Source: Anaeramoeba ignava BMAN | Taxonomy: Eukaryota; Protista; Anaeramoebae | Direction: 5' to 3' | Assembly: GCA_028826165.1 (NCBI GenBank) | Contig: JAPDFW010000056.1 | Location: 1-64,000 of the forward strand | Length of the DNA stretch: 64,000 nt | Shown: one piece after another, positions 5,701 to 9,950 of the stretch | Layout: the number at the start of each line of letters is the position of its first letter | How positions within the stretch are numbered: position 1 is the first letter of the stretch | Notes under the pieces: generated by a model | Seen by the model: only the letters and a program-made list of their open reading frames with translations | Databases searched by the model: none | Told to the model about the DNA's origin: nothing | Position numbers and translations under genes: made by a program

Positions 5701-8700
5701 AAAGAAAATTCAAAAATATTATTATTATCAATTTATTAAATAAATAAACAGAATAATGAAAGAATAAATAAAGAATATGAATCCAAAAGTAATAAATTAA
5801 ATGTTTTCAAGAAGAATTATGTTTATCTATAAATAATTTATTAATAAGAATATTTATTATTTTTTTTGAAAAGAATATTTGAATAAATTAAATTATTATG
5901 AGAATATATTTTGTATAAATAAATTGGATTTAGAAAAATAATGAATATAAGAATAGAAATTTTAAAATTACAAAATAAATTAATATAAATAAAATAACCT
6001 TATATAATAAATATAAATATTCAAAAATATTTTGATATAATTAATTAGAAAATTAATTAGAAAAATTATTATCAAATTTCATCAATATTATTATTATTAT
6101 TATTTAAAACTTCTTAAATAAATATTATAAGGTAAATAAATATGGAATAAATCAGAAAGAGAAATATTATTTATCCCTTTTTTTAATATTTGGAATGATT
6201 AATCATTTTATTATTGAAGAGATAAAATTTTATTATTGATTATATGATTATATTGATATAAAAAATTTTCATATATAGAAATTGTATTTAAAGTTCAAAT
6301 AATATTAATAACAATTCTTGAAAATTATGAATTAAAATCAAATAAAAATAAAAATAAAAATAAAAATAAAAAGGAAATATTAAATATCTTGAAATTATTC
6401 TTAATTCAAATAAATATATTGAAAATAATATTCAAAAAAAATTCAGAAAAAAAAAACAATTTTTTAATTAATTAATTAAGGTTTATAATCAATTTAAATA
6501 ATATTTCAAATCATTTATAAAATAATTATTTATAAAATAACAATTCTTATATAATTATATTATGTAACAAAAACCCTAATATTATTATTATTAAAAAAAG
6601 AAATAATATCAAAGAATAAATTTAATTGTTAATAAACATATTAAATCAAGTTTATTTAAAAAAAATTAATTTATATTCATATATTTTGACTTTTTGGAAT
6701 GAAATAAACATTTCTAATTTCATAATTCAAATAAATATAAGAAGATAGAAAATAATAGAAAAAAATTAAAATAAAATTAGAAAATCTTAATTCAAGAAAT
6801 TATATTCAATCTTTATAAATAAGATAGAAATAAGGAATACAAAATATTTCAAAATAATTCAAAGAATATTTATTTTTTAGAAAGATAAAAAGAAATTAGA
6901 ATGAATCAAGGATAGAAAAAAAATAACTTATTTAGAAATAATTAAATTATAAACCAAAAAAAAAATCAAAGAATAAAAAAATATCTAAAATATCAATAAA
7001 AAAAATATTATTCTTCTAAAATTAATAATTTTCATAAATAGAATCAATAAATATACTTATTAAATGAAAAAAATAATAATATGAAATATATCTATGTTAT
7101 TTAAAGAAAAAGAAAAGAAATATTAAATTATTTTCTTTATTTGTAAATATTAAATTTATCAAGAAATAAGAAATAAATGAATAAAAATCAATTCATTCAA
7201 TTAAATAAATAAACAAAAAAAAAACTAATAAAAGAAATTAACAGAAGGTAAATATATGAAAAAAATAAACAATAAAATATATTCAGAAGATATTTGAAAT
7301 TATATCATAATTTATAGTTAATGGGAAATAGAATATAATATAAGAAAGATGAATAGAAAATGAGAAATAATGAAGAAAATCAAATTCAAAATCAAATTCA
7401 ATAATGAGAATAAAATTAATAAGATAAATAACAAGGATAATTCTGAAAACAAAAACAAATTCAAAAATAAAAACAAATTCAAAGAAGAAAGAAAGATTCA
7501 AAGAAAATAAATTATAACAAAGAAAATAAATCTAAGAAAGGATACAAAGAATATTTGGAAATATAAATTAACAAAGATATCAGAATTAGAGTTAGAATCA
7601 AAATAATGAAAAGAATAATCAGAATATTATACAGATTATTTGATAGATTATTCTTAATTGGAAGATTAAATAGAATATGATTATAAAAATTAATTTAAAA
7701 ATGAATTATTCCATTTTCCTTTATTTTCTTTTTATCAAAATTACTTTAAAAAAACATAAAAAAAACATGTAGAAATCTCACTTATGATTTTCTTAATAAA
7801 ATCAAAAATCAAAATCTTATTTGATATTTCCCCAATTTCAAATTAAATTAAATTAAATTTAAATTAAATTTAAATTATTTTTTTCAAATGAACTAAATAA
7901 ATATTATTTTATTTGGGAAATTTGTTTTTGTTTTTATTCAAAAGAAAAATCACAAAAAAAATGTTTATTTTTACATACTATTTTTTTTCAAAATAAAATA
8001 AAAACAAATTTTCATTCAATAAATAATTCATTTTTTTCAAAAAAAAGGAAAAAAAGAAAAAAAGTAAATTTTGATTTTGATTTATTTTTTACTTCCTATT
8101 ATAAATAATTTAATATTATTCAATTTAAAATAAAAATTGATTATTTTTGATATTTATTTAATATTTAAATAAAATAATTTAATTTAATTTTAATTGTTTT
8201 TGTTTTTTGAATAATAAAAATGTAATTTAAATTGAAAAATTTTATATTATTTTACATCTTGTTTATTCCAATCAGCTCCTGAATTAATAAAATGATTAAA
8301 AAGACCCTTATTAATTGGTTCCTTTTGTGCAAAATAATGTAATAAAGTTGCTTCATCAGTCTTTATTTTTGTTTTTAAATTTAATATTGAGAAAAAACAA
8401 AATAATTCAAAAATGAAATGAATTAAAGCAAATTATTCATAATTTAAATAATAAAAATGAGTTAATAAATTAAAGAACTAATTGTTGTTAATTTTAATCA
8501 AAAAAATAATTCAAACCTCCTCTTTCTAAATTTATTTTTTAAATTAAAAATAAATAAATTAAATTAAAAATTAAATTAAAATTAAATTAAAAATGTTTTT
8601 GTTTTGTTTTGTTTTTGTTTTGAATTACATAATCTGATTTGTTAAATTCATCATCCAAAAGTTTTAATTCCTTTTCAATTTCAACGTTGTTACTCTTTAA

Positions 8701-9950
8701 ATTTGTAAAATTTTTTTGTTAAAATTAAATAATAAATCAAAATAGATTAATTTTTTTTTCCAAAATAATCATAAATATTAATTTAATATATTTTAATAAT
8801 AATTTCTTTTTTTTTAAATTTAATTATTTACTAGCTATTTATTAAATTGAATAATAAATAAATAATATTTAAATATTTAAGAAAAAAAGAATTGTGAAGA
8901 AAAAAAATTGGCAAAAAAAAAGATATTTACTTCCTATTTATTTTATGAATAATTATTTTTGAGTTAATAAATTTTTAAATATTTTATGAATAAATTAAAA
9001 TAATTAGGTTTAAAAAAAGGAAAAAAATATTTAATTTTTAAATTCCACAAATGAACAAAATGGCAAGGAAAATATATTTACTTCCTATTTATTAAATAAT
9101 AAATAATTATAAATAAATAAATAAATAAATAAATAAATAAATAAATAAATAAATAAATAAATAAATAAATAAATAAATAAATAAATAAATAAATAAATAA
9201 ATAAATAAATAAATAAATAAATAAATAAATAAATAAATAAATAAATAAATAAATAAATAAATAAATAAATAAATAAATAAATAAATAAATAAATAAATAA
9301 ATAAATAAATAAATAAATAAATAAATAAATAAATAAAAAAAAGGAGAGAATATTTATTTTGAAATTTCTCAAATTAAAAAAATTGGGAAAATGAGAAAAA
9401 ATGGGAAATGAAAATATATATTTACTTTCTATTTTATAAATAATTTTCATTTTTGTTTTGAGAATTGTTTTTTTTGTTTTTAAATATATTAATTTACAGG
9501 CTATTTTGTTTTTATTAAATATTTTCAATTCAAATTATTTAAAATAAATTTTTTGATTTAAAAATATAATTACTGGCTATTTTTATTTGAATGAAAATTA
9601 ATTAATTAGTTTCGGAAATAAATATATTTATAATTAATAAATTAGAGATTAATTAAATTCAAATTATATTTTTGATTTAAATTTGAAAATATATATATAT
9701 ATATATATATATTGATTTGAAATAAAATTACTTCTTTTTCTTTCATTAATTCTTGTTCTTTGTTGATTAATTCTTGCTTTTCTTTCATTAATTCTTGCTT
9801 TTCTTTCATTAATTCTTGTTCTTTGTTAATTAATTTTTGTTCTTTGTTAATTAATTCTTGTTTTTCTTTCATTAATTCTTGCTTTTCTTTCATTAATTCT
9901 TGTTCTTTGTTAATTAATTCTTGTTTTTTTTTTGTAGTAAAATTTTCCAT
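2799..9950 (-). CDS. Coiled-coil + ankyrin-repeat protein, multi-exon with 3-nt microexons; 3' end not found in the window
   Basis: Phase-0 exons: 9950-9732 (MENFTTKKK plus [14 protein letters not shown] heptads); six 3-nt exons (P,P,K,E,E,L); 8694-8629 ([22 protein letters not shown]); 8525-8517 (KEE); 8360-8256 ([35 protein letters not shown]); 3-nt exons E, Y, R; 2894-2799 ([32 protein letters not shown]). The last two large exons match the ankyrin consensus TPLH...LL..GA..N..D. All are flanked by AG/GT. Confidence 0.8.
3420..3740. repeat. (ATTTAT)n microsatellite
   Basis: Near-perfect hexamer array; source of the spurious YIYI ORF. Confidence 0.95.
4400..7690 (+). mobile_element. Heavily decayed non-LTR (LINE-like, APE-RT) retrotransposon inside an intron of the ankyrin gene
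   Basis: Motif remnants in the expected order: GYFN (4886-4897, ~GDFN), DKKI..SKII (~5652-5678), FEK..FE (~5865-5885, ~DFEKAFD), GINQ...LSLFL (from 6144, ~GVRQG.PLSPLLF), YIDI (~6250, ~YADD), [12 protein letters not shown] (~GLKIN..K) and KYLEIIL (6382-6402, ~KYLG). Many stops and frameshifts; boundaries are approximate. Confidence 0.55.
8832..9576 (-). other. Array of six consecutive single-codon microexons (CCA, CCT, AAA, GAA, GAA, CTA)
   Basis: Minus strand ATAG|NNN|GTAA at 9576-9574, 9500-9498, 9428-9426, 9084-9082, 8933-8931 and 8834-8832. They are separated by 69-341 nt AT-rich introns. Confidence 0.75.
9109..9336. repeat. (AAAT)n microsatellite inside a microexon-flanking intron
   Basis: Perfect tetramer array. 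Confidence 0.95.

Follow-up and report, generated by a model that had tools for sequence, protein, structure and literature searches.

Can the spliceosome assemble a coding sequence from exons that are only one codon long? This question arises from a 64,000-nucleotide stretch of the very AT-rich genome of the anaerobic amoeba Anaeramoeba ignava BMAN (assembly GCA_028826165.1, contig JAPDFW010000056.1, positions 1 to 64,000; hereafter the window), in which a preliminary description had pointed to a series of three-base units on the minus strand. We re-read this region and found the motif ATAG|NNN|GTAA in eight units across 7975-9576 and a ninth unit, TTAG|AGA|GTAA, at 3090-3088, which confirmed all nine sites of that description, as well as its observations that the units are always 3 nt long and never a stop codon and that the array introns measure 69-341 nt. 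All nine units belong to one coiled-coil/ankyrin gene on the minus strand. Judged from sequence, we consider it about 75% probable that the triplets are genuine, probably constitutive, one-codon spliceosomal exons. The first alternative to be weighed is that they stay outside the mRNA, so that 9731-8695 and 8255-2895 would each be spliced out, either as a single intron or by nested removal, while the AG-NNN-GTAA motifs would be relics of introns that had been duplicated in tandem or inserted serially.

Organization of the gene

The gene opens with exon 1 (9732-9950), which has a start ATG and 73 codons that are rich in K, E and Q and heptad-like (coiled-coil type), contains internal repeats of 21, 63 and 84 nt, and ends in phase 0 (GAA|GTAATT). 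Pfam searches were run exon by exon, and exon 1 on its own matched no family at or above the cut-off. It is followed by six triplets, m1 (ATAG|CCA|GTAA, 9574-9576), m2 (ATAG|CCT|GTAA, 9498-9500), m3 (ATAG|AAA|GTAA, 9426-9428), m4 (GAA, 9082-9084), m5 (GAA, 8931-8933) and m6 (CTA, 8832-8834), which spell P-P-K-E-E-L, exactly as previously read, and lead to exon 2 (8629-8694; 22 codons, phase 0 at both ends). The introns along this path, from exon 1 to exon 2, are 155, 73, 69, 341, 148, 96 and 137 nt long. Further downstream lie ankyrin exon 1 (8256-8360; 35 codons, with an 88% identical stretch in the NCBI model P0126), m7 (GAA, E; 8093-8095) and m8 (TAT, Y; 7975-7977), preceded by introns of 160 and 115 nt, respectively, and then a long intron of 4,884 nt (3091-7974) that carries a dispersed repeat, m9 (AGA, R; 3088-3090) and ankyrin exon 2 (2799-2894; 96 nt, 32 codons), which is homologous to residues 83-114 of P0135. 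The four large exons (9950-9732, 8694-8629, 8360-8256 and 2894-2799) are all in phase 0, as is every junction. The earlier placement of the units between phase-0 exons of a single coiled-coil/ankyrin gene was therefore correct, except that ankyrin exon 1, which had been given an end at 8254, ends at 8256; ankyrin exon 2 starts at 2894.

All nine sites read (A/T)TAG|NNN|GTAA, the flanking exons are in phase 0 and the triplets are stop-free, as would be expected of 3-nt microexons. The introns flanking them are short, have about 90% A+T and bear strong signals, GTAA(A/T) and (A/T)TAG. In total, the micro-exons account for 27 nt of at least 513 nt of recognized coding sequence (~5%). The predicted product would start with a coiled-coil N-terminus, continue with a P-P-K-E-E-L linker encoded by m1-m6 and a segment of 22 residues, and include two or more ankyrin repeats.

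Two simple repeats were observed in and beside the gene. A (TAAA)62 microsatellite (9093-9341) lies inside i3, the intron after m3, and accounts for its length of 341 nt here as against ~140 nt in the paralogs, and a tandem repeat of 170/333 nt (~3.4-6.7 copies, 88-90% matches) occupies 10024-11134, directly upstream of the gene start.

Three-nucleotide spacing in the window and in the genome

We counted the pattern TAG-Nx-GTAA for all spacers from N0 to N12 in the whole window. TAG-N3-GTAA had ten matches on the minus strand and none on the plus strand, as against 0-3 matches per strand for every other spacer, which excludes chance for the window units. The tenth N3 site (CAG, 32401-32399) was rejected as a micro-exon. 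Here a long exon (…V-L-A-G|gt) of the gene for a pyridoxal phosphate (PLP)-dependent enzyme (PF00291, E 8e-11) comes to its 3' end, and the site represents expected background.

A comparison of spacers across the genome had been proposed as a check, and it turned out in favor of the 3-nt units. In the 42.8-Mb assembly, ATAG-N3-GTAA occurred 1,649 times, whereas the other spacers gave 203-404 matches (N0 203, N2 404, N4 275 and N6 358). These other lengths served as the controls; reversing the pattern was of little use as a control, as such words are common in coding DNA. Among the five spacers, only N3 matches formed strand-consistent arrays with steps of 60-150 nt. On contig C1, isolated N3 matches were about as frequent as N2 or N4 matches, and thus the excess of ~1,300 N3 sites resides in arrays. 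To our knowledge, no genome with a 3-nt-specific excess of this size has been reported.

Only 19 of the 1,649 genomic triplets (1.2%) were stop codons (11 TAA, 8 TGA and no TAG), which is about the yield of a chance background of ~300 sites; the excess N3 sites are therefore essentially stop-free. Such avoidance of stops would be unexpected of intronic relics, and the zero-length junctions typical of recursive splicing, with 203 matches, were not enriched either. Moreover, 6-nt units showed no genome-wide enrichment (358 versus 1,649), which means that frame-neutrality alone is not a sufficient explanation and indicates a 3-nt-specific origin.

Paralogs and conservation of splice signals

The gene is part of a segmental repeat (window 1-10000) that exceeds 10 kb and is present in at least 12 copies, 93-96% identical to the window. 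A 340-residue open reading frame (ORF) adjacent to one paralogous copy is 99% identical to an NCBI protein of A. ignava. Exon 2 occurs nine times in the genome, in eight cases no more than 13 kb from the end of a contig and possibly in subtelomeric positions. In seven copies (88-96% identical) the 5' part is of the coiled-coil kind and m1-m8 are all present in the arrangement described above. In two others the module stands behind a different 5' part, namely a RING/kinase ORF (contig C27) or ankyrin exons (contig C108). The shared module comprises exon 2, the ankyrin exons and m7-m9, with 5' parts of three kinds (coiled coil, RING/kinase or ankyrin exons).

Alignment of the seven copies revealed that none of the 64 ATAG/GTAA columns flanking m1-m8 was substituted, as compared with 6.6 substitutions expected (P ~8e-4). 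The expectation was derived from base-specific substitution rates in the introns (variable columns: A 6.9%, T 5.7%, G 21.9% and C 31.4%) and replaces an earlier estimate (22.9% variable intron columns, P ~1e-6) that was inflated by homopolymer indels. The sole column that varies among the 64 does so by the length of a poly-A run, with GTAA unaffected. Within the m1-m8 introns of these copies, ATAG was not found elsewhere and GTAA only once. The splice signals are thus conserved beyond neutral expectation, and relics would not be expected to keep both of them intact at every site.

The triplets themselves behaved differently. Four of the 24 columns of m1-m8 were variable, approximately the neutral expectation, and all four changes alter the amino acid: m4 is AAA in one paralog (E/K), m6 is CTA in the window copy only and CCA in the other six (P/L), and m7 is also found as AAA or GGA (E/K/G). 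By comparison, m1 is identical across the seven paralogs, m8 is invariant, and m9 was retained in all four further copies that reach that far. Exon 2 and ankyrin exon 1 are open in 7/7 copies. It was also observed that the acceptor region at 8361-8364 and the first three codons of ankyrin exon 1 vary among copies (T-D-E, K-K-G, K-N-G, T-Y-G). These codons occupy hairpin positions of the ankyrin repeat, as does m7, and variation thus concentrates in the hairpin in large exons and m7 alike.

Fit to the ankyrin repeat

The region around m7-m9 allowed the triplets to be compared with a known repeat profile. Residues 4-35 of ankyrin exon 1 align weakly to positions 3-32 of the 33 positions of Pfam Ank (12.5 bits versus a cut-off of 21.1), and ankyrin exon 2 aligns from position 3, its Ank_3 score of 22.3 bits being equal to the cut-off (PF00023/PF13606 test); the relative P0135 scored clearly above the cut-off (Ank_2, 54 bits). 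The large exons do not encode profile positions 33, 1 and 2, and the triplets between the two ankyrin exons number exactly three (E, Y and R). The E-Y-R encoded by m7-m9 would accordingly form the hairpin residues that connect the ankyrin repeats.

The locus of P0135, a distant paralog (C93:125.5-127.6 kb), has introns that cannot be aligned to those of the window gene, yet the same junction contains AG|AAT|GTAA, AG|TAT|GTAA and AG|AAA|GTGA, i.e. N, Y and K, with TAT again at the position of m8. The positions of the micro-exons have thus been kept on C93, and the three residues missing from the profile are supplied in both of these divergent paralogs. The P0135 locus as a whole (C93:124069-128729, minus strand) has ~40 one-codon candidates. 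Thirteen of them (R A H W E P R M E N F F D) stand between its second and third ankyrin repeats, and at least 17 follow the third; among the latter is A-C-T-M-I-H, a string similar to the motif G-x-T-P-L-H but written in single codons. The public model instead runs into the intron. Its 34 spacers are mutually unrelated (median z 0.6) but all keep AG|NNN|GTA, and therefore such arrays are not mere satellites.

Public gene models and evidence to the contrary

Several lines of evidence weigh against the existence of one-codon exons. First, four NCBI models of paralogs (P0126, P0128, P0001 and P0123) contain no triplet residue at all. Since short-read aligners are unable to place 3-nt exons, these models weigh little, and their lack of every triplet is what the preliminary description had predicted of gene finders. 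Second, when P0126 and P0135 were used as protein queries, all matches were NCBI genome models, and none was a transcriptome-derived protein of the family; a search for RNA sequencing runs over 2800-9960 listed none. Third, the triplets change at an approximately neutral rate, and the large exons show 5 synonymous-only versus 16 amino-acid-changing codons (dN/dS ~0.67), which suggests near-neutral evolution of the family, in which some copies may be decaying. Fourth, much of the genomic N3 excess is concentrated in a restricted set of arrays, each with units that are mutually related, and hence the N3 sites are not independent events. Finally, m8 and m9 lie on either side of a 4.9-kb intron that contains a repeat, no 3' end was found for the gene, and, as the triplets are 3 nt long, the frame stays intact whether they are included or not.

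The errors of the public models are of several kinds. P0126 joins exon 1 to exon 2, and its end is a read-through into the intron after ankyrin exon 1, as is that of P0123 (the C108 copy). In P0128, an exon of an upstream gene is joined to exon 2, and the m7 acceptor opens a read-through last exon, whereas ankyrin exon 1 of P0001 continues into a spurious F/I/L-rich ORF of the T-rich long intron. The A. ignava gene models had been built with RNA-seq support (BioProject PRJNA634776), mapped by HISAT2, and the corresponding paper, which gives an A+T content of 80.65% for the genome and 91.86% for its introns, does not mention micro-exons (PMC11550330). Other Anaeramoeba genomes are reported to have more than 30,000 introns, and A. 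pumila to have a total of 22 (bioRxiv 10.64898/2026.04.11.717937). A. flamelloides is intron-rich. A protein search with ankyrin exon 1 returned NCBI paralog models and unrelated ankyrins from ENA or animals, but no transcriptome ORFs. One transcriptome protein of EukProt, P0009, matched exons on contig C50 with 100% identity, and its missing residue proved to be an ordinary split codon, not a micro-exon; all introns of its gene are of the ordinary kind. Uninterrupted relatives that encode Y-[K/R]-W-[S/T]-P-x-H-Y contiguously were not found, which is uninformative.

Weighing of the alternatives

The view that the triplets are intronic relics is favored by the direct joining of exon 1 to exon 2 in P0126, by the unchanged frame after skipping, and by the presence of duplicated copies among the introns, both i3/i4 and the spacers of some large arrays elsewhere. 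However, besides the shortage of stops and the intact signals, it would have to account for motifs that were kept after the spacers had diverged beyond recognition and for triplets that supply exactly the three residues missing from the ankyrin profile in two paralogs. We therefore regard it as unlikely. One-codon, phase-0 exons, together with an unusual splicing capability of this lineage, had been put forward in the preliminary description; the 3-nt excess, the stop avoidance, the paralog signals and the ankyrin fit strengthen that proposal, short of proving it.

It had also been proposed that the units are real exons used combinatorially, with the skipping of frame-neutral subsets giving rise to many protein variants. 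Each unit is 3 nt long and in phase 0, so any subset would be in frame; the residues at m4, m6 and m7 differ among paralogs, 4/4 changes altering the amino acid; the family is multi-copy and fast-evolving; and the micro-exon genes (MEGs) of Schistosoma use serial symmetric micro-exons in this way (PMC10526429). On the other hand, m7-m9 are all required for the 33-residue ankyrin register, the same three junction positions are retained in the distant C93 paralog, and strong, invariant consensus signals at all sites suit constitutive use. In addition, selection for frame-neutral skipping predicts an enrichment of 6-nt units, which was not observed (N6 358). Diversification by skipping thus found no support and appears quite improbable. 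Least probable of all is that the architecture worked in the past but that the window copy, or even the entire segmental family, has become a pseudogene, decaying in DNA that is rich in repeats and close to contig ends, with triplets that no longer have a role, a view that could draw on the dN/dS of ~0.67, the neutral rate of triplet change, the 4.9-kb insertion that splits the ankyrin domain, the missing 3' end, a degenerate-looking exon 1 in the C1 copy and the location of 8/9 copies within 13 kb of contig ends, but which is at odds with open large exons in 7/7 copies, with splice signals that are all intact, unlike those of decaying genes, and with the intact ATG and 73-codon first exon of the window copy.

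Splicing and origin of the arrays

If the triplets are one-codon exons, the introns are probably recognized singly (intron definition), because they are short, ~90% A+T and provided with strong GTAA(A/T) and (A/T)TAG signals. A 3-nt exon would then be joined stepwise: one neighboring intron would be removed first, fusing the codon to a larger exon, and the next intron would follow. Inclusion in the mRNA, this order of splicing and constitutive use are what we infer from the genomic sequence, and constitutive inclusion seems most likely.

With regard to origin, i3 and i4 are the only significantly similar pair of introns within the window array (z 5.1), which indicates one duplication of a codon plus its intron before the family was amplified. 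At one step or more, this array thus probably grew when a codon and the intron next to it were duplicated in tandem. The window introns were unrelated to those of four other arrays (median z ~0). An array at C1:408800-413600 (minus strand) has 32 one-codon units (QYKYPRRNRQYQ…RNYNRDLLEDDSDYRFPPQH) with spacers of ~73 nt. In this array, 28 spacers share ~83% identity, while almost every one of the 32 units has a triplet of its own, the codons being far more variable than the surrounding introns, a pattern that simple neutral duplication does not explain. Two further C1 arrays, at 1057400-1064800 (47 units) and 941900-943200 (7 units), are nearly confined to codons for I, M, L, F, G, Q and W; a single mutation separates most of these codons from ATT, and spacers of one locus are related to those of the other (max z 14).

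A broader and more tentative possibility, which we hold to be less likely than not but worth stating, is that coding sequence in A. ignava has undergone a lineage-specific breaking into single codons, with a spliceosome that routinely defines 3-nt exons, more than 1,000 of them and some in runs of dozens. Related short introns would have come to be placed at exact 3-nt steps, either because codon-plus-intron units were duplicated time and again while the codon changed rapidly, or by intron gain at codon steps, and the window gene would be one old, diverged example. Frame-neutral units of this kind could also be skipped, which might tune the length of loops.

Comparison with known systems

The closest parallel is found in the Schistosoma MEGs, whose exons of 3-81 bp make up the bulk of the coding region between introns of up to 5 kb, and which encode secreted proteins with variation by exon skipping that has been demonstrated (PMC10526429). 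Both systems have serial, symmetric, phase-0 very short exons in a multi-copy, fast-evolving family that is poorly annotated by automatic means (PMC10526429). Because serial symmetric exons down to 3 bp are known there (PMC10526429), the novelty claimed for serial one-codon arrays has to be tempered. The window gene differs in that its short exons are only 3 nt long and constitute ~5% of the known coding length (27 of at least 513 nt, i.e. not most of the coding region), its array introns measure 69-341 nt, and its predicted product is an intracellular-type coiled-coil/ankyrin protein instead of a secreted one.

Ultra-short microexons of animals and plants (1-15 nt) have canonical AG/GT borders, often preserve the frame and are missed by annotation and aligners (PMC8831610, PMC8042270). 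The triplets share with them the ultra-short length, the AG/GT flanks, the preserved frame and the absence from annotation. However, animal and plant microexons are single, lie between long introns and are often tissue-regulated by dedicated factors, whereas the candidate one-codon exons of A. ignava form runs of 6 to more than 40.

A 3' site beside a 5' site within an apparently single intron, which implies stepwise removal, is also seen in recursive splice sites (ratchet points). Recursive splice sites of long animal introns have zero length (AG|GTAAGT), and the mRNA retains no trace of them. In contrast, the spacing described here is always 3 nt, the introns are short (69-341 nt), and N0 matches were scattered and not enriched (203 versus 1,649 for N3).

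Introner-like elements, intron families that spread in some algae and fungi, resemble some A. ignava arrays in having near-identical introns (C1:409-413 kb, ~83%), as is seen where such families were gained recently. The window introns, unlike an introner-like family, are unrelated to other arrays (median z ~0), with only i3 and i4 related to each other, and neither a dispersed family nor terminal repeats nor target duplications came to light. We know of no introner that spreads at exact 3-nt steps. In our literature search, no paper was found that connects Anaeramoeba to micro-exons or reports one-codon exons in runs.

If correct, the proposed structure would be the most extreme exon-intron architecture known to us, with consecutive coding exons of minimal length and more than 1,000 of them per genome. 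It would challenge ideas on the minimal distance between usable 3' and 5' splice sites and provide a natural system for ordered, intron-defined splicing, and the strict preference for 3 nt without a 6-nt excess bears on how such introns arise. In that case, the published A. ignava proteome would contain systematic errors in its ankyrin families and in others: all four paralog models examined lack the triplet residues, and the tails of some are spurious, being read-through or of low complexity. In related genomes, the same error would be expected from standard aligners and gene finders.

Other features of the window

The repeat in the long intron (3091-7974) is present in ~12 copies at 93-98% identity inside the segmental family, and more than 30 other loci match it at 65-70% over 1-2.4 kb. 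The plus strand of this intron is strongly A-rich, and neither strand has a long ORF; the repeat is probably an old mobile-element insertion. Finally, two features were observed elsewhere in the window: ~850 nt of a 10-11-nt satellite (…ATTGATTTAAAT/ATTTATTTAAAT…) at 31300-32150, inside or after the gene for the PLP-dependent enzyme (exon end 32399), and a 2-kb stretch at 62001-64000 with a G+C content of only 0.4%.

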